From NCBI RefSeq assembly GCF_044704955.1, contig NC_091979.1:48236001-48300000 (forward strand): a stretch of DNA of 64,000 nucleotides. The letters run 5' to 3'. Of this stretch, positions 16,020-63,495 are shown in pieces. The notes below the pieces were generated by a model. It saw nothing but the letters and a program-made list of their open reading frames with translations. It ran no database searches and was not told the DNA's origin. This DNA comes from Pristiophorus japonicus (Eukaryota). Every line of letters starts with the position of its first letter. Within the stretch, counting starts at the first letter, position 1. Made by a program: the position numbers and the translations under genes.

Positions 16020-17320
16020 TAAAGAACACGGACAATATAAACTTTCATTTGGAAATGCATGGGTTAATTAAGGAGAGCCAGTATGTATTTGTTAAAGGCA
16101 AATCGTATCTGACTAACTTGATTGAATGAGGTAAAAGAGAAGGTTGATCAAGGTAGTGCAGTAGATGTTGTATATGTATACTTTCGGAAGGCATTCAACA
16201 AAGTGCCACAAAGGAAGCTTATTAAGAAGATGGAAGCCCATGGAAGTAAGTGGAAAGTGGTGATATGGATACAAAATTGGCTCAGTGACAGGAAGTAAAC
16301 AGTGGTGATGGATGGATGTTTTTCAGACTGGGAGGCGGTTTGCAGTGGTGTTCCCCAAGGGTCAGTTTTGGATCCATTATTCTTTGCAATTTTTATAAAC
16401 GACCTAGACTCGGTTGTAGGGAGCATCATTATAGCGTTTGCAGATGGTACACAACTTGGAAAAGTAGTAGGTCATAACTTCAGGATGATATAGACTGGAT
16501 GGTGAAATGGGCAGAAGCATGGCAGATGGAGTTCAATGCGGACAAGTGTGAAGTGATGCACTTTGGGAGGACTATTATGGAATGATAGTATGCTACAAAT
16601 GGCACAATTTTGAAAAGTATAGATGAGCAGAGAGATCTTGGTGTCCATACACACAAATCCTTAAAGGTAGCAGGGCAAATTGATAAGGTGGTTAAAGAAA
16701 CATATGGGTTACTTGGATTTATAAATAGAGGAATACAATATAAAAAAAGAAGTCATGCTAGAACTTTATAAATCACTGGTTAGGCCTCAGCTTGAGTTTT
16801 GTGGACAATTCTGGGCACCACACTTAAGGAAAGATGTACAGACATTCGAAAGGGTGCAATGAAGGTTTATCAGGATATTATCAGGAATGAGGGGCTTCAG
16901 TTAAGAGGAGAGGTTGTAAAAGTTAGCACTGTTCTCCTTGGAACAGAGAAGGTTAAGGGTGAAATAATAGAGATTTTCAAGATGATGAGAGGTTTTGATA
17001 GAGTAAATAGGGAAAAAATATTCCCTCTGGTGAGTGGGTCAATAACTAGAGGTCACAGATTCAAAATCATTGGAAAAAGATCTAGAAGAGGATGAGGAGA
17101 ATTTGTCAGGATCTGGAATGCTATACCTGAAAAGGTGGTGGAAGCTGGTTCCATCAGTAATTGTAAAAGCGAGTTGGACAGGTACTGGAGGAGAAGGAAC
17201 TTACAGGGTTACGGACAAAAAGCAGAGTTGTGGAACTAAGCACGACGGCTGTTTCAAAGAGTCAGCACAGGCACAACGGGCCGAATGGCCTCCTTCTGTG
17301 CTGCAAGTTTCTATGGTTGT
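16020..17320 (+). mobile_element. Old CR1 RT/3' fragment
   Basis: [12 protein letters not shown], many stops. 3'UTR hairpin GGCCGAATGGCCTC at 17279-17292. Confidence 0.85.
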
Positions 17321-22762: not shown

Positions 22763-23828
22763 ATAGAAATGTTTGTCTTTTTAACAGAAATGGGTGCAGC
22801 CAGATTGGGAGCAGTATGTTTAACCAGCGATTATTGGACCATTAACTCTCCATTCACCGCCTGGCAGAGAGCCAGAAAATCTTCTTTTGTCATTTTTGCT
22901 TGCTAACTGCTCATCTAGTCTTTTGTTAATAAATAGGTCGATATGTTTTGAAAAGATGAATTATATGTGAGAAATGATACAATCAGCACCATTGTGTTAA
23001 TATGCTTCATGTTTGCAGAAAAGCATGATTCAGATCAATATATCCACAAGAATGCTCACTCTGCCATTGTGAGTTTAAAAAAAGAGTCAAACTTTAAATT
23101 CACATTACCATGGAAGTTAAACATTACAAAAGGTCAAGATACTGTGCTATATATTTCACTTGATGCCCTCAATTTTACACAGAGGTCACAATCAAAGCTC
23201 TTTAAACATCACTGGGCAAACATGAAGCATATTAACACAGCTGTGCTAGGCAACAAAGAGACACTAAAGTCACTTGGTTGTAAAACTACAGGTTTACTGG
23301 TAAGCTAAGCTTCGAATAAATTTACCCACTGCTATCTTCTGCACATATCCAGCTGGAAGTAGAGGTCAGCCTGGACACAGAAATATCAGAACTCCCAACC
23401 CTAAAATAATGTCAGTTCAGAAACTAGGCCCCAAGTTTCGTGCCGCGGCGAAAACGGCACACCTCCGAGCTGGGCGCCTGTTTTTCGCGCCGAAAACTGC
23501 GCCTAAAAAAAAATCCGATATTCTCAAGCTCCTTGGAGCTCGATGTCTGCTTGGTGCGGCGCGCTCTTCGCAGCAGGGGGCGGAGCCTAACACTGGCGCC
23601 GATTTTCTAAGCAGCAGGGGGCGGGTACAATTTAAATTAGCCTTCGTGGTGCCGGCAACCCTGCGCGTGCGCGTTGGAGCGTGCGCGCACGCGCAGTCTC
23701 ACACAAACATTGGCACTCGGCCATTTTTAAAAATACTGCAGAAAAAGTGAAGATTTGTTTCTTGGACCCCTGCAAAGGCTTGTAATTTAATTTTTTTTGA
23801 TATTTCTGTGTGTGAGGGAGTGCTTTTA

Positions 23829-23935
23829 ACTCTTTTAGAGTCTACCTGCAAAAACATAAAACATTAAATCGTGCCACCCAACCTGGGTGACACACCAGAC
23901 ATTTACAAGGCCCTTTTTTTTCCTTTTTTTTTTGG
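23829..23935 (-). mobile_element. 107-bp retroposed insert (L1/Tx1-type signature) with a 15-bp TSD
   Basis: GAGGGAGTGCTTTTA duplicated at 23814-23828 and 23936-23950. Target ends in TTTT/A. Confidence 0.7.
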
Positions 23936-24091
23936 GAGGGAGTGCTTTTAGCAGCACTGCTGAATAAATCACCTGCTGAAATCAGTGAGTTCAGCTTTTC
24001 ACTGCTAAACTTGCAGAACCGGTGCTGCATCGGTGCATGCAAATTAAGGACTGTGTGTTTGGAGAAATAAGAGTGCCAATTCAACTTTGCA

Positions 24092-24720
24092 ATGGATCAA
24101 CGTCCACCAAGAACAAAGAATTTCTCGCATGAGGAAGTGGAGATATTAGTCAACGTAATTGAGCAGAGATGGCAGGAGCTAGATACCAGCAACAGAGGTC
24201 ACATAAAAGTGCCACCAAAAGAAATGAAGAAACGCTGGAACCAGGCAGCAGGTTGATTTAAGGGGCCATGATGCATTTTCAGGACTTACCCTCTTCCTCG
24301 CATGCTGCACCACAGTCCCAGCCTGCGCCTCCCTGTGTAATGGTGCCGCTTGCAACACCAAGCATCCCACCGTCCGTGCCCGTGCCTCCCAGTGTAGCGG
24401 TGCCACAAGGCAGACCCAGGCAGAGGAGCAGGAGATTGGAGGCACACTCTCCTGAGATGCAGCGTGCAACAGATGCGGCTCAGGTTGTGGCATTGGGTAT
24501 GGAGACCAATGAGCTTACCCGATCACTCATCGGTGGCGTCAGTGCAGTAGGTGAAGAGTTGACGGTCCTGACAGGAGAAATAGCAGTAATGACACGGGAA
24601 CTTAGGAAGGGAATGTCCGAGGGAGTGCAATCGACGGCACAGGCCGACAGGGAGGGCCTGGTTGAGGTAGGTGCTGTAATAAGGGCACACAGCCCAGCCA
24701 ATCAAATGACACCCCCATGA
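24092..24720 (+). pseudogene. Harbinger Myb/SANT-like gene with internal deletion
   Basis: MDQRPPRTKNFSHEEVEILVNVIEQRWQEL...KKRWNQ (24092-24244) is joined directly to last-exon sequence (SPEMQ...LTRSL) homologous to 5790-6413. Confidence 0.8.
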
Positions 24721-24826
24721 GGAAGTGAACATTCACTGAGATATGGATGAGACATAGTTGCAGCCTTTCTTTGCTGCTTTTGTTCTTGTTCTTGATGTAG
24801 CTGTAGTAGAGTTTTTCAAATTGAAA

Positions 24827-25400
24827 TTGTTTTGTAAGTTTTGTAACTTTACAACTTATAAGGGATCTTATGGTTTTTAAGTGATCTTATAGTGTAAATG
24901 CTCTCACATTTTTTTGTATCTTATTTAATTTTGCACCTAAAAAGTGATCCTGAAGTTTAAGTGTTCTTCAGAGTGTAAGATTTTTCACAATGAAACTGTT
25001 TTGTAAGTTTTGTAACTTTACAACTTATAAGGGATCTTATGATTTTTAAGTGATCTTATAGTGTAAATGCTCTCACATTTTTTTGTATCTTATTTAATTT
25101 TGCACCTAAAAAGTGATCCTGAAGTTTAAGTGTTCTTCAGAGTGTAAGATTTTTCACAATGAAACTGTTTTGTAAGTTTTGTAACTTTACAACATATAAG
25201 TGATCTCAGGGTTTTCAAGTGATCTTATAGTGTAAATGCTATCACCTTCTGTAAATTATTTAATTTTGCAACTAAAAAGTGATCTTGAAGTGTAAGTGAT
25301 CTTAGAGTGTAAAATTTTTCACATAGAAAGTGTTTTGTAACTTTTGTAACTTTACAAGTTTATAAGTGATCTTAAAGTTTTGAAGTGATCTTCAAGAGTC
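24827..25400. repeat. Tandem repeat, ~169-bp unit x ~3.4, AT-rich
   Basis: GTTTTGTAA unit starts at 24829, 24998, 25167 and 25332. Internal AAGTGATCTT subrepeats. Confidence 0.9.
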
Positions 25401-25567
25401 ATATTAAAAAGTATAGTTTGATACAACAAATATTTTATTACAGTGACGTTAACTTTTCAATAAAATATTTTTTCATTAAAACTGTTTCATGTTCCAGTAA
25501 CACAACACAACGTAGGAACAACTGCAAAGAATAAACATGTCCATATGCAAAAGTGGTCGCAGAGCCC

Positions 25568-26790
25568 TCAGGCATCAGTAGTTGAAGCGTTCACGGATGA
25601 GCTGCTGGCGCAAGTCTCGAGCAACGTTAAAGGGGCATGATGGACGGCCCTCCTCCGACCTCGTGCTCCGGCATCAGGCACTTGCATGCTTTCCTGATTG
25701 TCGTTATCATCCACATCCTGGTCTTCCGTAATACTATCATCATGCACTGGACCCTCACATCGGTCTTCTGGTTCCACGACCAGCTCCTGCTGCCTTATGA
25801 TGGCTAAGTTATGAAGCATGCAGCACACAACAGTGAAGTGACTGACAATCTGAGGAGAGTATTGCAACTGTCCTCCGGAATGGTCCAGGCATCGGAATCG
25901 CTGTTTCAATATGCCAATGGTCCTCTCAATGATGCTGCGCGTCGCAATGTGCGCCATGTTGTATTGACGGTCAGCTTCTGTCCGTGTCACGCGTATGGGC
26001 GTCATGAGCCAGGTGGTCAAGCCGTACCCTTTGTCTCCCAGTAGCCAGCTATGCCCTTCTGGCTGCTGCTCAAACATGTCAGATAGAACGCTGTCGCGTA
26101 GGATGAATGCATCGTGGGTGCTGCCAGGGTATCTCGCGTCGACTGACATGATGCGCTGCTTGTCGTCACACACGAGCTGCACATTGATAGAGTGGAAACC
26201 TTTCCTATTTCGGTACTGCTCAGATTCCTTCACGGGCGCTCGCAAGGCTATGTGGGTACAATCAATGCAGCCCTGTACCTTTGGGAAGCCGGCAATCCTG
26301 AAGAAGCCCACAACCCTCTCATGGATCGCTTGTGCGGTCATTGAGAAATTGATGAAGTCATTCCTTCGCGCATAAAGTGCAGCCGTGACCTGGTAAATGC
26401 AGGCATGTATTGCACGTTGAGAGATGGCACACACATCTCCAGTTGTAGCCTGAAACGATCCCGAGGCATAGAAAGAAAGTGCAGCTGTTACCTTCCCTTC
26501 AACAGCCAAGGCAGTGTCCTTCTGCTTCTGGGCTGCAAATCTGCTCTCACCATATCACAGATCTCAGTGACAACTTCTCTGCGAAAACGCAGCCTTTTCA
26601 CACAATCAGCCTTGCTCATGTCCAGGTACGAGCGCCTGGTTCAATATTGTCGGCGTGGGCAAGGTCTCCTGCCCATCAACCTACGGGCTACGACGTTCCT
26701 GGTGTGGTGAGCTCTAATCAATTCTCTCCTATGCAGTGAATTGATGGCAAACCATTGCATAATACGTGGTGTTGACAATACAGCACCCAT
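25568..26790 (-). pseudogene. Harbinger DDE transposase, nearly intact
   Basis: ATG 26790 (MGAVLSTPR) follows acceptor TTTGCAG. TGA at 26641-26643 and a frameshift at ~26515. Then a 313-aa ORF with CIDCTH, YPGSTHDAF, GDKGY, IERTIGILKQRF. Confidence 0.93.
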
Positions 26791-26836
26791 TCTGCAAATT
26801 TAAATATAAAACTGTCGATGTGGCTGCCTCTCCCTG

Positions 26837-27138
26837 TCCAAATGGCCTCAGTCCCCCTCACAGCTCGAAGGCTGCTGCTGTATCTTTGGCTGCCGGCCAG
26901 CCACTGACGCCGCCCCTAAAGCATGGCCGAATGGCCTCAAGCACCATAAAGAGCTGCGTGTGTCCTGCGTTGATTCTTCGGCTGCCGGCCAGCCACTGAC
27001 ACCGCTGCTATCTCATGGCCGAATGGCCTCACGTCGGTCCGCTGATTCTTCGGCTGCCGGCCAGCCACTGACGCCGCTGATATCTCATGGCCGAATGGCC
27101 TCGGGTCCGTCCGGTGCTGCTTCTTCGCGGCCAGCCAC
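26837..27138 (+). repeat. 62-bp direct repeats separated by variable spacers
   Basis: Repeats at 26877-26938, 26969-27030 and 27041-27102, plus partial copies. Each ends ATGGCCGAATGGCCTC. Spacers are 27, 30, 10 and 13 bp. Confidence 0.85.
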
Positions 27139-27984
27139 GAAGAGAATGAAGGCCTGCCTCAAGCACTGCAGCTCAGCTCAAAGCTTGCTGCCGCTGCCGT
27201 CGAGACACTGACGCCACACCCCCGCCTGTCTCCAACATGAAAGGCCTGCCTGAAGCACTTTCACTCAGGTAGGAACATGGTTTATTTAATCTTTTCTTTG
27301 CTTATAAATTTTTATTCAGGTTGGATTTATTTGTATAATATTTGTATAAGTATAACTAAGGATTGATTGTAGAATTTAATGACTTCCCTTCCCCCCCTCA
27401 CCTCGTTCCCTACACCTAATTTGTAACCTACACCTGATTTTCTAAAGTGTAGACAAGGTTTTTTCGAGCGTACAAAAATCTTCACTTACTCCATTCTAAG
27501 TTAGTTTGGAGTAAGTTTTCACTCACGAAACTTTGAAATCAGGCGTAAGTGGCCGGACACGCCCCCTTTTGAAAAAAAAATTCTGTTCCAAAGTGAAACT
27601 GTTCTACCTGACTAGAACTGGAGCAAACTAAATGTGGAGAATTCCGATTTCTAAGATACTCCGTTCTACACCAGTTGCTCCTAAAAATCAGGAGCAAATC
27701 ATGTGGAAACTTGGGGCCCTAGATGTGAAACATAATTTACAACTTGGAAAGGTACCGGGCACAAGGTAGTATTATTGTTTCATTTGGTGAACAGTGTGCT
27801 CTTAATGGTGGGAGACATCAGTTCTAATGGGGAACAGGCATTTTTCCCCACACTCACTGTATCAGCGTTCCTCGGTTAGGTGGAGCATGAGTTAGGTGCA
27901 GTAAAACGTCTCCCAAAAAGTGTCTCAAAAACGTACCCTTAGCCCTAATGGCAGAAAAGCATCAGTGTAAATATTTTCATTGCT

Positions 27985-35114: not shown

Positions 35115-38100
35115 GTGACCACCTCTGGTTCAATACGAAGTGTAGAAGATGCGGCATGTCAGGAGCAGCACCAGGCATACCTTAGAATGAAATACCAACC
35201 TGGTGAAACTATTATACATGGCTACCCACATGCTAAACACCAAAAGCAGCAGGCTAAAGACAGAACTATGTGGTGCCACACCAGCAGGTTATGCCCATCA
35301 CTAGCCCATCCACCTTCAGTCATGAACAGTAAATGGGCAGTCCTGCAAGTAACAGTTGGAGACTGCTCCATGAACATCACCATTAACAAATATGATGTGA
35401 TTGGGATTACGGAGACGTGGCTCCAGGATGATCAGGGCTGGGAACTCAACATTCAGGGGTATTCAACATTCAGGAAGGATAGAATAAAAGGAAAAGGAGG
35501 TGGGGTAGCATTGCTGGTTAAAGAGGAGATTAATGCAATAGTTAGGAAAGACATTAGCTTGGATGATGTGGAATCTATATGGGTAGAGCTGCAGAACACC
35601 AAAGGGCAAAAAACGTTAGTAGGAGTTGTGTACAGACCTCCAAACAGTAATAGGGATGTTGGGGAGGGCATCAAACAGGAAATTAGGGGTGCATGCAATA
35701 AAGGTGTAGCAGTTATAATGGGTGACTTTAATATGCACATAGATTGGGCTAGCCAAACTGGAAGCAATACGGTGGAGGAGGATTTCCTGGAGTGCATAAG
35801 GGATGGTTTTCTAGACCAATATGTTGAGGAACCAACTAGGGGGGAGGCCATCTTAGACTGGGTGTTGTGTAATGAGAGAGGATTAATTAGCAATCTCATT
35901 GTGCGAGGCCCCTTGGGGAAGAGTGACCATAATATGGTGGAATTCTGCATTAGGATGGAGAATGAAACAGTAATTTCAGAGACCATGGTCCAGAACTTAA
36001 AGAAGGGTAACTTTGAAGGTATGAGGCGTGAATTGGCTAGGATAGATTGGCGAATGATACTTAGGGGGTTGACTGTGGATGGGCAATGGCAGACATTTAG
36101 AGACCGCATGGATGAAGTACAACAATTGTACATTCCTGTCTGGCGTAAAAATAAAAAGGGGAAGGTGGCTCAACCGTGGCTATCTAGGGAAATCAGGGAT
36201 AGTATTAAAGCCAAGGAAGTGGCATACAAATTGGCCAGAAATAGCAGCGAACCTGGGGACTGGGAGAAATTTAGAACTCAGCAGAGGAGGACAAAGGGTT
36301 TGATTAGGACAGGGAAAATGGAGTACGAGAAGAAGCTTGCAGGGAACATTAAGGCGGATTGCAAAAGTTTCTATAGGTATGTAAAGAGAAAAAGGTTGGT
36401 GAAGACAAACGTAGGTCCCCTGCAGTCAGAATCAGGGGAAGTCATAACGGGGAACAAAGAAATGGCGGATCAATTGAACAAGTACTTTGGTTCGGTATTC
36501 ACTAAGGAGGATACAAACAACCTTCCGGATATAAAAGGGGTCAGAGGGTCTAGTAAGGAAGAGGAACTGAGGGAAATCTTTATTAGTCGGGAAATTGTGT
36601 TGGGGAAATTGATGGGATTGAAGGCAGATAAATCCCCAGGGCCTGATGGCCTGCATCCTAGAGTACTTAAGGAGGTGGCCTTGGAAATAGCGGATGCATT
36701 GACAGTCATTTTCCAACATTCCATTGACTCTGGATCAGTTCCTATGGAGTGGAGGGTAGCCAATGTAACCCCACTTTTTAAAAAAGGAGGGAGAGAGAAA
36801 ACAGGGAATTATAGACCGGTCAGCCTGACCTCAGTAGTGGGTAAAATGATGGAATCAATTATTAAGGATGTCATAGCAGTGCATCTGGAAAATGGTGACA
36901 TGATAGGTCCAAGTCAGCATGGATTTGTGAAAGGGAAATCATGCTTGACAAATCTTCTGGAATTTTTTGAGGATGTTTCCAGTAAAGTGGACAAAGGAGA
37001 ACCAGTTGATGTGGTATATTTGGACTTTCAGAAGGCTTTCGACAAGGTCCCACACAAGAGATTAATGTGCAAAGTTAAAGCACATGGGATTGGGGGTAGT
37101 GTGCTGACGTGGATTGAGAACTGGTTGTCAGACAGGAAGCAAAGAGTAGGAGTAAACGGGTACTTTTCAGAATGGCAGGCAGTGACTAGTGGAGTGCCGC
37201 AAGGTTCTGTGCTGGGGCCCCAGCTGTTTACATTGTACATTAATGATTTAGACGAGGGGATTAAATGCAGTATCTCCAAATTTGCGGATGACACTAAGTT
37301 GGGTGGCAGTGTGAGCTGCGAGGAGGATGCTATTAGGCTGCAGAGTGACTTGGATAGGTTAGGTGAGTGGGCAAATGCATGGCAGATGAAGTATAATGTG
37401 GATAAATGTGAGGTTATCCACTTTGGTGGTAAAAACAGAGAGACAGACTATTATCTGAATGGTGACAGATTAGGAAAAGGGAAGGTGCAACGAGACCTGG
37501 GTGTCATGGTACATCAGTCATTGAAGGTTGGCATGCAGGTGCAGCAGGCGGTTAAGAAAGCAAATGGCATGTTGGCCTTCATAGCGAGGGGATTTGAATA
37601 CAGGGGCAGGGAGGTGTTGCTACAGTTGTACAGGGCCTTGGTGAGGCCACACCTGGAGTATTGTGTACAGTTTTGGTCTCCTAACTTGAGGAAGGACATT
37701 CTTGCTATTGAGGGAGTGCAGCGAAGGTTCACCAGACTGATTCCCGGGATGGCGGGACTGACCTATCAAGAAAGATTGGATCAATTGGGCTTGTATTCAC
37801 TGGAGTTCAGAAGAATGAGAGGGGACCTCATAGAAACGTTTAAAATTCTGACGGGTTTAGACAGGTTAGATGCAGAAAGAATGTTCCCAATGTTGGGGAA
37901 GTCCAGAACCAGGGGTCACAGTCTGAGGATAAGGGGTAAGCCATTTAGGACCGAGATGAGGAGAAACTTCTTCACCCAGAGAGTGGTGAACCTGTGGAAT
38001 TCTCTACCACAGAAAGTAGTTGAGGCCAATTCACTAAATATATTCAAAAGGGAGTTAGATGAAGTCCTTACTACTCGGGGGATCAAGGGTTATGGCGAGA

Positions 38101-38430
38101 AAGCAGGAAGGGGGTACTGAAGTTTCATGTTCAGCCATGAACTCATTGAATGGCGGTGCAGGCTAGAAGGGCTGAACGGCCTGCTCCTGCACCTATTTTC
38201 TATGTTTCTATGTTTCTATTCTGAATCGTAGTGGAGCCCACCATCAGTCCAAGAAACAAAGCTGAAGTGTTTGCCAAAAGGGCCAAGTGGATGATCCTGC
38301 CAGACATCTCCAACATTATAGATGGCAATGCCCAGCCATTTTGGCATTAAGGAATATGACACTAAGAAAAGGTTGAGTGCACTGAACACAACAAAGGCTA
38401 TGAGCCCCGACAGCATCTCGGCATTAGTTA
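35115..38430 (+). mobile_element. Old LINE of a second family (35115-35384 and 38221-38430), split by CR1
   Basis: ACQEQHQAYLRM...MNITI before the CR1 continues as LN..GA after it. TSD ATT at 35382-35384 and 38218-38220. Confidence 0.7.
35385..38217 (+). mobile_element. Young CR1, 5'-truncated just inside ORF2; remaining ORF2 uninterrupted
   Basis: Open from NKYDVIGITETW to the stop at 38120 (~910 codons) with all EN/RT motifs downstream of the junction. (TTCTATGT)n tail. Confidence 0.96.
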
Positions 38431-38934
38431 CATCGAGCTCAAAATTGGCCAGGAGTTGCTCCGTTTTTTTTGGAGCAACTTGATTTTTCTGGAGTATCTT
38501 AATAACCCCCATTTTGCACCAGTTAGTTAGTGAGTTAGTTGGGATTTTTTTAGTTTAGTTTTTTTTTCAAAAGGGGGCGTTACCAGCCACCCACGCCTGT
38601 TTTGGCCATTTAGGCCACTTTGGCCAGTTAACAGTTACTCCAAACTAACTTGTGGCCGCTTGTGAAAACCGGTGGGGAGAGATAAGAAATCAGAGCAGGT
38701 AGGTACATCGGAGGCCAGCAAAACTTAATGACTCGATTAAAGAATGTGAATAGGATCAAACAGCTATACAGAACATCATATGATAAACTTCGCAAAGTTA
38801 ATTTACTATACAACAGAAGCATTCATGGAAGCTTAAACGACAAAAATAAAAGAAATAAAGAGACAAAACATACTTACATAATTTTTTTCAAAATATCCAA
38901 GTAAGTCCTACCCTACCTTCATCTTCAGCCCAGG

Positions 38935-39530
38935 AACATTACAGATTACTATAAACACTGACAGCAGCCAGTAACAATCAATCAAACCAAATGAAGATCC
39001 AGAATGGGGATTGCTTCTGAATGTATCCTTCCAGCGACGCAGCAAGTCCAGATTCCAGTCCCGGCGACCTTCACTTCGGGACCAGCCTCAGGCCTGCACT
39101 GATGAGTTCGAGGATGATTCTCCTTTTTCAGCAGGGTTTGCTGGGCTGTAACCAGATTTCTTCTCTCCTCCTCTCTTCTTCCACATAACGCCACCGATGA
39201 CCAGAGCAATCAGGGTGACGGCAGCAATCACAATTCCAACAATCAAACTGAGATTTGTTCCCTTTGGGGATCCTGGAGTCACTCAGAATGTCCCGTCCAA
39301 GTCTCAGTTCTTCACTCCTGTGTTGCCACTCTGCTCATACTGACAGGAATAGGTGGCTCCATGCTCGGACTCAATCTCAGCCCATCTTGTCAGCTGGTAG
39401 GTTCCGTCCTGGTTGGGCAGAATGCCACTGGATTCCGTGTCCGTGATCGGCTCGCGATTTCTCAGGAGGGTGATTTCGATATCACGAGGGTAAAAACCCG
39501 TGACTAGAGACAAGAGAGTTGGGTCAATTT
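38935..39530 (-). pseudogene. Intronless MHC class I heavy-chain fragment: alpha3 (Ig C1), TM, cytoplasmic tail, 3'UTR
   Basis: KLTQLSCL[+2 nt]VTGFYPRDIEITLLRN...GILPNQDGTYQL...YSCQY, then in the same frame after two TGA stops LIVGIVIAAVTLIALVIGGVMWKKR...GYSPANPAEKGESSSNSSVQA*. No introns between domains. Confidence 0.9.
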
Positions 39531-39584
39531 GGCCACTTGGCCTGGGATAGGGGCGGGACGCACACAGAGATGCTGAGGGCGAGG

Positions 39585-39675
39585 AGCTACTGCGCATGCG
39601 CGCACACTCCAACGTGCATGTGCAGACATCCTGGCACTGTTTTCAGCTCCGGACGCTGGCTCCGCCCCCGACTCG
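39585..39675 (-). promoter_or_regulatory. MITE internal promoter-like motifs (GC box, NRF1-like)
   Basis: GGGGCGGAGCC and GCGCATGCGCA on the minus strand. The GC box and degenerate NRF1-like motif recur at 62241-62330 and upstream of the Myb gene in element #2. Confidence 0.55.
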
Positions 39676-39794
39676 ACTGGCCACGCTGCGCGAAGACCCG
39701 GGACTAATTTTTTCGGCGCACTTAGAAACGAAGAAAAGCTGCGCAACTCGGGTGAGTGCGCCAAAAATCGGCATGGCCCAATTTTGAGCCCATT

Positions 39795-41275
39795 GAGTCT
39801 ACAGCACAGAAATAGGCTATTCATCCCAACTAGCTCAAGCTCCACATGAGCCTCCTCCCACCCCTCATCATCTAACCCTCTCAGCATGCTCTTCTATTCT
39901 GTTCTCCCTCATGTGCTTATCTAGCTTTCCCTTAAATGCATCTATGCTATTTGCCTCAACGTTTTAAAATTAATTCATTGGATGTGGGCGTCACTGGCAA
40001 AGCCAGCATTTATTGCCCGCCCCTAAATGCCCTTCAGAAGATGGTGGTGAGCTGCCTTCTTGAACCACTGCAGCCCGTGTGGTGAAGGTACTCCCATAGT
40101 GCTGTTAGGGAGGGAGTTCCAGAATTTTAACTCAGTGACGATGAAGGAATGGCAATATATTTCCAAGTCAGGAAGGTGTGTGACTTGTGACTTGAGGAGG
40201 TGTTCCATGCGCCTGCTGCTCTTGTCCTTCTAGATGGTAGAGGTCGCAGGTTTGGGAGGTGCTGCCGAAAAGGCCTTAGTAAGTTGCTACAGTGTATTTT
40301 GCAGATGGTACTCCTTGTGGTAGCGCAAACCATTCTTTGGATAAAGAAGTTTCTTCTGAATTCCTTTTAGATTTATTAATGCCTGTCTTATAATCATGAC
40401 CCTTAGTTTGGGCATGGAAATAGCTTCTCTATGTTTTTCCTGTCATGCCTGTTCATCATTTTAAAGATCTCTTTCAGATCACCTCTCAGCCTTTTTGTTT
40501 CTAAAGAAAAGAGCCCCAACCTGTTCAGTCTTTCATGATAGTTATAACCTCCCAGTTCTGGTATCATCCTTGTGAATCTTATTTGCACCTTCTCCAATGC
40601 CTATATCTCATTTTTATAATTATGGAGACAGGAACTGTGCACAGTACTCTGTGTGATCTAACCAAGGTTCTATACAAGTTTAACATGGCTTCCCTGCTTT
40701 TTAATTCTATCCCTCTATAAATAACCCCTAGTGCTTAGTTTTTATTTTATGGTCTTATTACCTGCATCGCTACTTTTAGTGATTTGAATATCTGCCCCCC
40801 CAGATCCCTTTGCTCTTCTACCCCATTAGACTCTTGTTATCCAAGCAGTATATGGCCTCCTTATACTTCCTTCCAAAATGCGCCACTGCACACTTATCTG
40901 TATTGAAATTCATTTGCCAATTAAACGGCAATTTTGCAAGTTTATTAACGTCTTCTTGTATTTTGTCACATTCTTCCTTTGCATTAACTATGCTTCCAAT
41001 TTGGCATTGTCGACAAATTTTGAATTTGTACTTCCGATTTCCGAGTCCAAATCGTTAATGTAAATTGTGAACAACATTGGTCCCGGCAGCAATCCCTGTG
41101 GAACACCACTTCCCAAGTTTTGCCAATCTGAGCTTCTGCCCCTTCTACTTTTACTCTCTGTTTTCTGTTTTGTAGCCAGCTAGCTATCCATTCTGCTACT
41201 TGTCCCTTGACACCACATGCTGTGACCTTCATCATGAGTCTACTATGCAGTACCTTCTCAATGGCCTTTTGACTT
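39795..41275 (-). mobile_element. Old CR1 (-) with an inserted 3' end of the second LINE family (~39965-40325)
   Basis: CR1 RT and 3' motifs (LNRLGLFSLETKRLRGDL). The insert carries the RQHLPNLRPLPSRR tail region. Confidence 0.75.
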
Positions 41276-43781: not shown

Positions 43782-43883
43782 TAAGAAGGATATTAAGAAG
43801 GACAAGAGCAGAAATGTTGTAGGAACACCATCGCCTCCAACTTTCCCTCCAAGCGACACAATGTCTTGACTTGTACATATAAT

Positions 43884-46165
43884 GGGGTCAAGTTTCTGCC
43901 TGAGTTGCTTCTATTTTTTTGGAGCAACTAATTTAGAATGGAGTATCTTAGAAATTGCAATTCTCGGCCTTTAGTTTGCTCCAGTTCTAGTGAATTAGAA
44001 CAGTTTCATTTTAGAACAGATTTTTTTTTCAAAAGGGGGCATGTCCGGCCACTAACGCCTGTTTTGTAAGTTTAGGCTGCGAAAACTTACTCCAAACTAA
44101 CTTAGAATGGAGTAAGTGCGGATTTCTGTACGCTCAGAAAAACCTTGCCGACACTTAGAAATCAGGCATATGGAACGAAAGATGGTGGGGGGGGGGGGGG
44201 GAGGAGGTTTACAAACATTAAACACTTCACTTTTACAAATAAAGAGCCATCATCAATATTAAATGATAAATAAACCAATAAATAAACCAAATCAATCCAA
44301 ATAAATTAAAAAATTAAAAGTTATAAAAAAATTAAAAATCATTCAATAAATAAAAAATTATTTCTACTCACCTTCTGCAGCACCAGGGAGAAGGGGGGAA
44401 GAGAAGAAGATAGGGGGGAGAAGGGAGGAAGATGGGGGGAGAAGGGAGGAAGATGGGGGGGAAAGAGAGGAAGATGGGGGGGAGAAGGGAGGAAGATGGG
44501 GAGAAAGAGAGGAAGATGGTTGGGCGAAGGGAGGAAGATGGGGGGGAAAGAGAGGAAGATGGGGGAGAAGAGAGGAAGATAGGGGGGGGAAGAGAGGAAA
44601 ATGGGGGGAGAAGAGAGGAAGATGGTTGGGAGAAGGGAGGAAGATGGGGGGGAAAGAGAGGAAGATGGGGGAGAAGAGAGGAAGATAGGGGGGGAAGAGA
44701 GGAAGATGGTTGGGAGAAGGGAGGAAGATGGGGGGGAAAGAGAGGAAGATGGGGAGAAGAGAGGAAGATAGGGGGGGGAAGAGAGGAAGATGGGGGGAGA
44801 AGAGAGGAAGATGGGGGGAAGAGAGGAAGATGGGGGGAGAAGAGAGGAAGATGGGGGGAAAGAGAGGAAGATGGTTGGGAGAAGGGAGGAAGATGGGGGG
44901 AAGAGAGGAAGATGGGGGGGAAGAGAGGAAGATGGGGGGGAAGAGAGGAAGATAGGGGGGGAAGAGAGGAAGATGGTTGGGAGAAGGGAGGAAGATGGGG
45001 AGAAAGAGAGGAAGATGGGGGGGAAGAGAGGAAGATGGGGGGGAAGAGAGGAAGATGGGGGGGAAGAGAGGAAGATAGGGGGGGAAGAGAGGAAGATGGT
45101 TGGGAGAAGGGAGGAAGATGGGGAGAAAGAGAGGAAGATGGGGGGGAAGAGAGGAAGATGGGGGGGAAGAGAGGAAGATGGTTGGGAGAAGGGAGGAAGA
45201 TGGGGAGAAAGAGAGGAAGATGGGGGGGAAGAGAGGAAGATGGGGGGAAGAGAGGAAGATGGGGAGAAAGAGAGGAAGATAGGGGGGAGAAGAGAGGAAG
45301 ATGGGGGGAAGAGAGGAAGATGGGGGGGAAGAGAGGAAGATGGGGGGGAAGAGGGGAAGATGGGGGGGAAGAGAGGAAGATGGGGGGGGAAGAGAGGAAG
45401 ATGGGGGGGAAGAGAGGAAGATGGTTGGGAGAAGGGAGGAAGATGGGGAGAAAGAGAGGAAGATGGGGGGGAAGAGAGGAAGATGGGGGGAAAGAGAGGA
45501 AGATAGGGGGGAGAAGAGAGGAAGATGGGGGGAAGAGAGGAAGATGGGGGGGAAGAGAGGAAGATGGGGGGGGAAGAGAGGAAGATGGGGGGGAAGAGAG
45601 GAAGATGGGGAGAAAGAGAGGAAGATAGGGGGGAGAAGAGAGGAAGATGGGGGGAAGAGAGGAAGATGGGGGGAAGAGAGGAAGATGGGGGGGAAGAGAG
45701 GAAGATGGGGGGGAAGAGAGGAAGATGGGGGGGAAGAGAGGAAGATGGGGGGGGAAGAGAGGAAGATGGGGGGGGAAGAGAGGAAGATGGTTGGGAGAAG
45801 GGAGGAAGATGGGGAGAAAGAGAGGAAGATGGGGGGGAAGAGAGGAAGATGGGGGGAAAGAGAGGAAGATAGGGGGGAGAAGAGAGGAAGATAGGGGGGA
45901 GAAGAGAGGAAGATAGGGGGGAGAAGAGAGGAAGATTGGGGGGAAGAGAGGAAGATGGGGGGGAAGAGAGGAAGATGGGGGGAAGAGAGGAAGATGGGGG
46001 GGAAGAGAGGAAGATGGGGGGGAAGAGAGGAAGATGGGGGGAAGAGAGGAAGATGGGGGGGAAGAGAGGAAGATAGGGGGGAGAAGAGAGGAAGATGGGG
46101 GTGGGGGGGAAGAGAGAAGACGACGAAGGAGAAGCCCCGCACGCAGCCGATGCCGGGCTGCCGAC
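43884..46165 (-). mobile_element. Harbinger MITE lacking its promoter end, with minisatellite cargo
   Basis: TIR GGGGTCAAGTTTC at 43884. Arm homologous to 27270-27718 (reverse complement). Donor AAG|GTGAGT at 44371. Confidence 0.82.
44388..46115. repeat. Polypurine minisatellite, ~19-21-bp unit (GGGGGGAAGAGAGGAAGAT variants)
   Basis: Direct inspection: ~1.7 kb with higher-order blocks of variant units. Confidence 0.97.
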
Positions 46166-62091: not shown

Positions 62092-63495
62092 GGGCCCAAG
62101 TTTCCACAAGAAAAAAACGGGCGCCCCTCCGAGCTGGGCGCCCGTTTTTCGCGCCTAAAACGGCGCCTAAAAAAATCCTCGGTATTCTCCACCTACTTAC
62201 AGGTCTTCTGGCAGTCGGCGCAGCCAGCACGAGCTGTGTGGGGGGCGGAGCCAGGTCCCGGCGCTGAAAACAGTGCCGGGACCTCTGCACATGCGCGCTA
62301 CAGTCGGCACGCAAGTGCAGTAGCTCCAGGCGCCGAACTGTGTGGGAGGGGCCCGAAGCACGCAGCCCCTAACCCTGGCTGAATGGCCTCACTGGGGCTG
62401 CGTCAATGAGGCTCCTCCCACAGCCAGCTCCTGCTCCCCGCCCGACCAGACCCGACACTCGCTCCCCCCCCCCCACCCCCGCCGACCAGACCCGACACCC
62501 GCTCCCCCCCCGCCGACCCGACCCGAGACCCGCTCCCCCCCCGACCCGACCCGAGACCCGCTCCCCCCCCCCCACCGACTGACCCGACACTCGCTCCCCC
62601 CCCCCCCCCGCCGACCAGACCCGACACTCGCTCCCCCCCCCCCACCCCCGCCGACCAGACCCGACACCCGCTCCCCCCCCGCCGACCCGACCCGAGACCC
62701 GCTCCCCCCCCGCCGACCCGACCCGAGACCCGCTCCCCCCCCGCCGACCCAACCCGAGACCCGCTCCCCCCCCCCACCGACTGACCCGACCCGCGCTCCT
62801 GTGACCCGACACCCCCCCCTCTCTCCTCACCCCCCCTCCGCTCTCTCCTCACCCCCCTCCGCTCTCTCCTCACCCCCACCCCCGCTCTCTCCTCACCCAC
62901 CCCCTCTCTCTCCCTCCCCCCCCTCCGCTCTCTCTCCCTCCCCCCCTCCGCTCTCTCTCCCTCCCTCTCTCTCTCTCTCTCTCCCCCTCCCGCTCAGCGG
63001 CACGAACGGCTGCAGAATTCTCCCTGGCTGAAGCACTTTCACACAGGTAGGAAGATGGTTTATTTAATCTTTTCTTGGCTTATAAATGTTTATTTAGTTG
63101 GATTTATTTGCATAATATTTGTATAAGTATAAATAAGGATTTATTGTAGAATTTAATGAGTTCCCTCCCCCCCCCCACCTCGTTCTGGACGCCTAATTTG
63201 TAACCTGCGCCTGATTTTTTAATGTGTAGAACAGGTTTTTTCAGTTCTACAAAAATCTTCACTGGCTCCGTTCTACTTTAGTTTGGAGTACATTTTCACT
63301 GTGGAAACTTTCAAATCAGGCGTCAGTGGCCGGACACGCCCCCTTTTGAAGAAAAAATTCTGTTCTAAACTAGAACTGTTCTACCTGACTAGAACTGCAG
63401 AAAAAAAAATGTGGAGAATTGCGATTTCTAAAATAGTCCGTTCTCCACCAGTTGCTCCTAAAAATCAGGCGCGAATCATGTAGAAACTTGGGCCC
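62092..63495 (+). mobile_element. Harbinger MITE inserted in CR1 ORF2
   Basis: TIR GGGCCCAAGTTTC / GAAACTTGGGCCC. 3-bp flanks ATA/ATT; removing the element and one copy restores CR1 spacing. Right arm highly similar to 27247-27718. Confidence 0.93.
62435..63000. repeat. C-rich minisatellite (CCGACCCGACCCGAGACCCGCTCCCCCCC variants) followed by CT-rich repeats
   Basis: Direct inspection. Confidence 0.95.

Follow-up and report, generated by a model that had tools for sequence, protein, structure and literature searches.

A decayed MHC class I fragment in the variable interior of a putative PIF/Harbinger-type element of the shark Pristiophorus japonicus

The element, its class I cargo and its relatives

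At positions 38435–39791 of a 64,000-nucleotide stretch of the Pristiophorus japonicus genome (assembly GCF_044704955.1, contig NC_091979.1, positions 48,236,001 to 48,300,000 of the forward strand; hereafter the window, in which the number of Ns is 0) lies E38, a non-autonomous element bounded by terminal inverted repeats (TIRs) that carries a piece of a class I gene of the major histocompatibility complex (MHC) between its two arms. The left TIR, GAGCTCAAAATTGG (38435–38448, plus strand), matches the right TIR, CCAATTTTGAGCCC (39778–39791, plus strand), in inverted orientation at 13 of 14 bases. The element is flanked by the trinucleotides ATC on the left and ATT on the right, which are alike at two of three positions and are possibly a decayed 3-bp target-site duplication (TSD). 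The left arm (38435–38936, plus strand) ends in ...CTTCAGCCCAGGAA, and up to this motif it aligns with the left arms of the three relatives described below. The right arm (39531–39791, plus strand) opens at its inner edge with the palindrome GGCCACTTGGCC (39531–39542, no strand assigned) and contains a CpG-rich core (39560–39700) that includes GCGCATGCGC and GGCTCCGCCCCC. The right arm resembles a CpG island, its observed/expected CpG ratio being 0.95 (left arm, 0.49), and it holds a GC box in addition to GCGCATGCGC. We also consulted contigs from public sequencing runs of the same organism, of which the listed pieces are a sample and the depths a rough guide. One perfect contig (record 1, depth 12.7) runs from the unique left flank into the TIR, while matches of other genomic copies to the left end of E38 begin at 38437 or 38440, as judged from contigs and joints.

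The cargo occupies 594 bp on the minus strand (38937–39530). A previous sequence-only reading had likewise recognized a class I fragment between the arms, but its estimate of ~596 bp (38935–39530) is here refined to these limits. In its own reading direction, the cargo begins with a partial alpha3 domain (C1-set; 39298–39530, minus strand) that starts at approximately residue K210 of the Pristiophorus class I protein P0153, about 15 codons into alpha3. This is followed by the connecting peptide, the transmembrane (TM) helix, a basic anchor and a serine-rich cytoplasmic tail (together 39091–39297, minus strand, delimited by a collinear tblastn alignment and containing a premature stop at 39283–39285). 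The original class I stop codon comes next (39088–39090, minus strand), where the alignment with P0153, P0152 and P0151 reaches their last residue, and the cargo closes with a 151-nt piece of the class I 3' untranslated region (3'UTR; 38937–39087, minus strand) that is cut off within the UTR. It reads away from the CpG-rich right arm, the putative promoter-like end of the element, in the orientation described earlier.

For the cargo searches, the two stop-free pieces were used separately, and no joined or read-through sequence was employed. The stop-free alpha3 piece matched the Pfam family C1-set (E 1.3e-12), its nearest solved structures in the PDB were the alpha3 domains of MR1, CD1 and class I molecules, and a full-library search returned shark class I proteins at 71–72% identity. 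A follow-up protein search added class I sequences from Pristiophorus, Heptranchias, Squalus, Heterodontus and Scyliorhinus. Conversely, tblastn with shark class I proteins as queries yielded a single collinear high-scoring segment pair (39552–39091) that reached the last residue, with identities of 76% over 155 amino acids for Pristiophorus P0153 (E 2e-74), 74% for Heptranchias P0151 and 72% for Squalus Q8HWH7. The assignment of the cargo to alpha3, TM, tail and 3'UTR therefore stands, based on the C1-set match and this collinear alignment. The extension of the alignment into the right arm ('AVAP...', its first ~10 residues) was rejected as a chance match, since the same arm sequence occurs in the relative E62, which has no class I cargo. 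A word search among annotated proteins with a 102-amino-acid open reading frame (ORF) running from the right arm into alpha3 returned nothing, a blank made weak by the length filter. The closest proteins (P0153, P0151 and P0152) are classical-type shark class I molecules. Because these closest relatives appear, in our reading of their sequences, to keep the classical peptide-end-binding residues, the source of the cargo was probably a classical-type class I gene of a squalomorph-like shark.

Non-functional and dead, the fragment is inert for immunology. Besides the stop at 39283–39285, a second nonsense codon lies at 39304–39306; the relatives have arginine at both positions, and both stops fit a CGA>TGA CpG pattern. 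At position 39306, most other contigs hold the base that restores CGA. A 2-nt insertion near 39505–39508 additionally shifts the frame (+2).

In a separate observation from the protein searches, the Heterodontus francisci protein P0005, annotated as CD1d2-like, joins a long interspersed nuclear element (LINE) ORF2-like N-terminus (…GNPKAFFRHL…) to a class I alpha3-TM-tail region that lacks one tail segment. This gene model probably derives from a pseudogene or retrocopy beside a LINE in that species.

Three relatives of E38 lie elsewhere in the window. E62 (62092–63495, minus strand) is a complete non-autonomous family member whose slot, the region between the arms, consists of G-rich minisatellites, while in E43 (43880–46101, plus strand) a left arm gives way to a long minisatellite with a 20-nt unit. 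The third is an autonomous-like copy of 4.3 kb (23427–27718, minus strand) with perfect 14-bp TIRs (GGCCCCAAGTTTCC) and a 3-bp TSD (TAG/TAG). It carries a DDE ORF at 25568–26509 that matches Pfam DDE_Tnp_4 (E 8e-40) and lacks an ATG start. Two tandem repeats lie within this copy, a 169-bp unit present 3.5 times at 24812–25392 and a 72-bp unit present 2.4 times at 26971–27138, the latter in the slot position. The copy looks degenerate, as exemplified by the 169-bp repeat. When its remaining ORFs were inspected for a Myb/SANT second ORF, none had any Pfam match. Its TSD, TAG, is unlike the classical 3-bp TWA duplication of PIF/Harbinger elements (PMC4482050). Given the DDE_Tnp_4 ORF and a TSD of 3 bp, the family would nevertheless be of the PIF/Harbinger (PHIS) type. 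Over the left 474 bp of the autonomous-like copy, E62 shows 88% identity. E38 matches that copy at 74% over 93 bp and, in the right arm, at 86% over 37 bp, and its right arm matches E62 at 81% over 90 bp; the remainder of E38 can be aligned with its relatives in layout only. By these alignments, E38 appears to be a distant subfamily of the PIF/Harbinger family represented in the window; going by contig depth, this subfamily would number several hundred members. The sequence-only reading had described a Harbinger-type non-autonomous element at this very place, with which the 13/14 termini and the relationship of the arms to the DDE_Tnp_4 copy agree.

Borders of the cargo and the variable slot

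Both ends of the cargo fall on borders that belong to the element family. In a four-way alignment of the left arms of E38, E62, E43 and the autonomous-like copy, the sequences are alike up to ...CTTCAG(C)CAGG and then diverge fully, so that the left cargo border is the point at which the four members of the family in the window cease to be alike. Beyond this point, E38 continues with the class I 3'UTR, E62 and E43 with G-rich minisatellites and the autonomous-like copy with the 72-bp array. The right cargo border is the palindrome that opens the right arm. Its GGCC-N4-GGCC pattern recurs at the homologous site in the 72-bp units of the autonomous-like copy (26925, 27017 and 27089) and, imperfectly, in E62. 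Other family members in the contigs follow E38 as far as 38936 and pick it up again at 39531 or 39532, without the cargo, and one of these 38936->39531/2 joints holds 25 other letters between the arms. This 25-nt spacer of other members was not found in the window. Since the contigs of other members join 38936 to 39531/2, the cargo fills exactly the variable slot of the family, having replaced a short spacer; the earlier proposal that it fills the variable interior of the element is borne out.

The junctions themselves carry none of the marks of retroposition that were looked for. The listed joints have zero letters common to both sides, so there is no TSD around the cargo, and a search for direct repeats of at least 5 nt around it was negative. 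The overlap between cargo and arm amounts to at most 2 nt on the left and at most 1 nt on the right. The longest A-run in the cargo does not exceed 5, and neither AATAAA nor ATTAAA occurs there. We thus agree with the sequence-only reading that the cargo has no intron-sized interruption, poly(A) or TSD, a hidden TSD or poly(A) having been looked for without success.

Several further features of the slot were recorded. Its minisatellites, at 44393–46101 (a 20-nt unit repeated 83 times) and 62436–62995 (31–43-nt units), are both G-rich and seem to have expanded from the purine-rich left-arm end, and most of the slot variability may reflect expansion in place and not capture. On the plus strand, the left-arm end (38900–38936, 63023–63060 and 44370–44395) consists of a pyrimidine tract followed by CAG and resembles a splice acceptor, while about 17 nt inside it the opposite strand reads AG/GTRAGK and resembles a donor. 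The idea that the slot might serve as an internal exon was dropped, since E62 does not preserve the acceptor-like CAG found upstream of the cargo on the minus strand.

Processing and donor of the class I fragment

In general, MHC genes devote one exon to each Ig domain, with an intron after the Ig-like domain exon. Consistent with this layout, the Heterodontus isoforms X6/X8 (P0155 versus P0007) diverge directly after alpha3 ('...ILDW'). The Heptranchias proteins P0156 and P0151 diverge after the TM anchor, where P0156 ends in 'KKRG-RK-stop' and P0151 goes on; the end of P0156 would fit a read-through into a phase-1 intron starting GTAGGAAG... These isoform breaks in other sharks probably mark exon borders, and the cargo spans both the alpha3–TM and the TM–tail border without interruption. 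A genomic contig (record 3) points to the same place, as its match to the cargo breaks off at 39292, no more than 5 nt from where the alpha3–TM border is predicted, before continuing into unlike sequence. On these grounds the cargo would derive from a spliced sequence.

Additional support came from the sequencing runs. In runs X5 and X6, the cargo-to-arm depth ratio was 100- to 10,000-fold above that in the whole-genome shotgun (WGS) runs X1 and X3, for which reason X5 and X6 are probably RNA. A 663-nt contig from run X5 (record 18), abundant and probably RNA, is collinear with 38935–39465 at ~89% identity. As the contig extends 134 nt past the 3' end of the cargo, the cargo is an internal piece of a transcript-shaped sequence.

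The genome also holds class I sequences other than the cargo, and at least 20 distinct class-I-like contigs were found at single cargo sites in the WGS data. The DNA contigs stop matching at varied 5' points (39186, 39215, 39292, 39417 and at least 39504), and all of them continue 3' of 38935, which suggests that the genome harbours processed class I copies truncated at the 5' end. One of these DNA copies, instead of RNA, may therefore have been the direct source of the cargo. Two of these contigs (records 2 and 3) are too short at their 5' end to have been the donor, whereas a third (record 7) may qualify. A literature search on the exon structure of shark class I genes and on gene capture by Harbinger elements or miniature inverted-repeat transposable elements (MITEs) in sharks found no direct statement.

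Origin of the composite

The explanation that we consider probable, if only just, is that an intron-free class I fragment was captured into the spacer of the element during break repair and decayed thereafter. A break would have occurred in the short internal spacer of a resident non-autonomous PIF/Harbinger-type element, the spacer corresponding to the hypervariable slot of the family, which is bounded by the conserved ...CTTCAGCCAGG on one side and the GGCC-N4-GGCC palindrome on the other. It would then have been sealed with an intron-free class I piece, either through end joining, with a free fragment of complementary DNA (cDNA) or DNA, or through template switching during gap repair. Truncated at both ends (mid-alpha3 to mid-3'UTR), the inserted piece would have replaced a spacer of ~25 nt, and the donor could have been either an incomplete cDNA from a strongly expressed class I mRNA of classical type or a processed class I DNA copy. 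No selection would have acted afterwards, and the fragment would have decayed through two nonsense changes of the CpG type and a frameshift, ending ~10% diverged from the expressed relative. Break repair fits because the junctions are near-blunt, the spacer was replaced, a palindrome adjoins the site and the region is prone to minisatellites in the relatives. Conversely, a target-primed insertion of a retrocopy is unlikely, given that its hallmarks are absent and both cargo ends are internal to the transcript. The anatomy of the composite, its borders, the missing hallmarks of retroposition and the collinearity with both protein and probably-RNA contigs were observed directly; the parental introns, the repair mechanism and the donor we infer.

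Capture during break repair has parallels in other systems. Templated insertions and cDNA capture at breaks, with endonuclease-independent LINE insertion among them, have reportedly been described by Teng (1996), Moore & Haber (1996), Morrish (2002) and Onozawa (2014). E38 resembles these cases in the lack of a tail or TSD, in a microhomology of 0–2 nt and in the small target deletion. Those breaks, however, are scattered, while the E38 site is a fixed, family-wide slot beside a palindrome within a transposon, and the insertions there are transcript-derived, whereas an RNA or cDNA donor is only putative for E38. Abortive gap repair in P, Ac/Ds and other elements usually leaves short filler DNA copied from nearby DNA or from the element itself. 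Here too, the element interior is replaced by foreign sequence and both ends are kept, but the E38 filler is 594 bp of an unlinked, processed gene. Tan et al. (2021, PMC8277862) explain the single-copy Pack-TIRs of animals (TIR transposons carrying host gene fragments) for the most part by gap filling that does not depend on transposition.

Several points weigh against a one-off repair with a spliced transcript. First, the introns of the parental gene are deduced here from other sharks and from the general rule, not from the gene of the species itself. Second, WGS contigs of single depth cross the alpha3–TM border unbroken (records 2 and 7), so that class I copies without introns are present in the DNA and the cargo may not have been RNA when it was captured. 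The RNA intermediate proposed earlier is thereby weakened, as DNA-level capture from a retro-pseudogene fits equally well. Third, a high-depth DNA unitig (39048–39232; records 6 and 13) spans TM to tail, on account of which real genes may lack TM and tail introns here, leaving a single intron as the test. Fourth, the slot borders are the same across diverged subfamilies, which suggests a capture mechanism more specific than a random break. Lastly, a joint 38936->39032 occurs in one contig of run X1 and in three of X3, and a 204-nt contig of run X5 (record 17) matches 38919–39105 at 88%, thereby crossing the left junction by 17 nt. These hint at a second, diverged copy of the composite, which would be unexpected after a one-off repair, barring a later duplication or move of the composite.

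The conserved borders and the possible second copy could also be accommodated if a dedicated capture slot of the Harbinger element took up spliced class I mRNA and the composite then moved by cut-and-paste to new loci. We regard this as unlikely, albeit worth serious consideration: subfamilies share the same conserved slot borders, little of the TIRs has been lost, and both the 38936->39032 joint and record 17 cross the left junction at ~88%. Yet at those cargo sites where nearly every contig differs from the window, the window's own letters reach a contig depth of only ~8–30 where legible and are absent at three listed sites. Together with the depth of the flank contig (12.7), this residual depth points to a single copy of the composite at near-identity, and no near-identical second copy was seen. 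None of the listed contigs shows a copy of the composite with other flanks or TSDs, and the earlier claim that it is mobile by cut-and-paste consequently finds no support so far. Furthermore, the slots of two of the three relatives in the window hold tandem repeats that seemingly grew in place, and class-I-like DNA contigs (records 2, 3 and 10) cease to match exactly at 38935 and continue into unlike sequence instead of the arm. The more far-reaching version, a 'retro-Pack-TIR' in which a fixed capture site repeatedly takes in spliced host sequence and the transposase spreads the alpha3-TM-tail module in the genome, strikes us as distinctly improbable.

A LINE-mediated processed pseudogene that fell by chance into a resident MITE deserves little credence. 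The several intron-free class I DNA copies in the genome, which look 5'-truncated, with varied 5' stops and all extending past 38935, would be in keeping with such an event. It would also follow the default of Tan et al., who treat intron-free sequence in TIR elements as retroduplicates (PMC8277862), removed it from their animal survey as possible retroduplicates and call the ARF6 retrogene inside MER20 ambiguous (PMC8277862). The E38 cargo, however, lacks at least the last 134 nt of the 3'UTR, poly(A) and TSD, both its ends fall on the slot borders of the family, and the spacer was replaced rather than split, as the 25-nt joint of another member illustrates. Compared with a retrocopy nested in a transposon, such as ARF6 in MER20, E38 is alike in being an intron-free, non-functional copy of an expressed gene inside a DNA transposon. 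It differs in lacking a poly(A) tail and TSD, in its truncation at both the 3' and the 5' end, in ending on internal borders of the element and in the replacement of the spacer.

Slighter still is the case for plain DNA-level capture of the Pack-TIR kind, with a class I gene of this species that is uninterrupted from alpha3 to the 3'UTR as its source. DNA contigs do pass the predicted exon borders (records 2, 6, 7 and 13). Set against this are the established generality of an intron after the Ig-like domain exon in MHC genes, the Heterodontus isoforms that break exactly after alpha3 and the match of record 3, which ends at 39292, within 5 nt of the alpha3–TM border. Moreover, the contigs that cross the borders have single-copy depth and differing 5' ends, as retrocopies would. 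Tan et al. (2021, PMC8277862) reported 370 Pack-TIRs in animals, TIR transposons whose two ends enclose part of a host gene. Like these and Pack-MULEs, E38 has a host gene fragment of hundreds of base pairs between the arms of a non-autonomous TIR element, of which members without the fragment exist, and like Pack-TIRs the composite looks single-copy. Unlike the usual Pack-TIR cargo, which keeps the intron-containing structure of a genomic parental copy unconnected with transposable elements, that of E38 crosses exon borders without an intron-sized interruption; its host element is of the PIF/Harbinger type and resides in a shark, and for E38 no parental locus was identified.

A chimeric assembly, in which the arms would have been joined to a class I piece that does not adjoin them in the animal, is barely credible: no contig among those listed spans either arm–cargo junction at 99–100%, but a perfect contig enters the TIR from the unique left flank (record 1), the window's own letters occur at a depth of ~8–30 at most legible cargo sites (absent at three), a diverged contig crosses the left junction (record 17) and the junctions lie exactly on family borders, unlike a random misjoin.

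Taking break-repair capture as the preferred explanation, E38 is best filed as a Pack-TIR-like composite, namely a processed class I fragment in a Harbinger-type slot that survives as a decayed relic. It belongs to the grey zone that Tan et al. described for intron-free cargo, with unusually clear anatomy. The cargo is a tidy curiosity, neither a working gene nor a proven mobile immune module. Its clean borders and the absence of a tail and TSD are the reason to think that transcript- or retrocopy-derived sequence can come to fill the inside of a TIR element without retroposition. Should further processed gene pieces occupy this slot elsewhere in the genome, the family would offer a natural setting for work on the acquisition of Pack-type cargo, and greater interest would follow only if recurrent processed cargo and mobilisation hold genome-wide. 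In addition, the fragment joins other signs that many processed class I pieces lie in this genome apart from the gene itself, and these could inflate MHC copy-number typing from alpha3 or the 3' end.

Two observations concern the repeats around E38. The GGCC-N4-GGCC pattern occurs 16 times in the window versus 0.72 expected. Apart from the sites in the family members, it is found, for example, at 17279, 21229, 31933, 49788, 53719 and 56914, mostly as GGCCATTCGGCC, and most copies belong to a high-copy repeat starting ...CATAGAAACATAGAAAATAGGTGCAGGAGTA-GGCCATTCGGCC-CTTCGAGCCTGCACC... that is unrelated to the Harbinger arms. Furthermore, very high-copy repeats lie on both sides of E38 (38000–38219 and 39980–40200), with WGS contig depths of 10^6–10^7; the left one ends at 38219 in a (CTATGTTT)n-like tail and the right one begins at 39980, behind a T-rich run.

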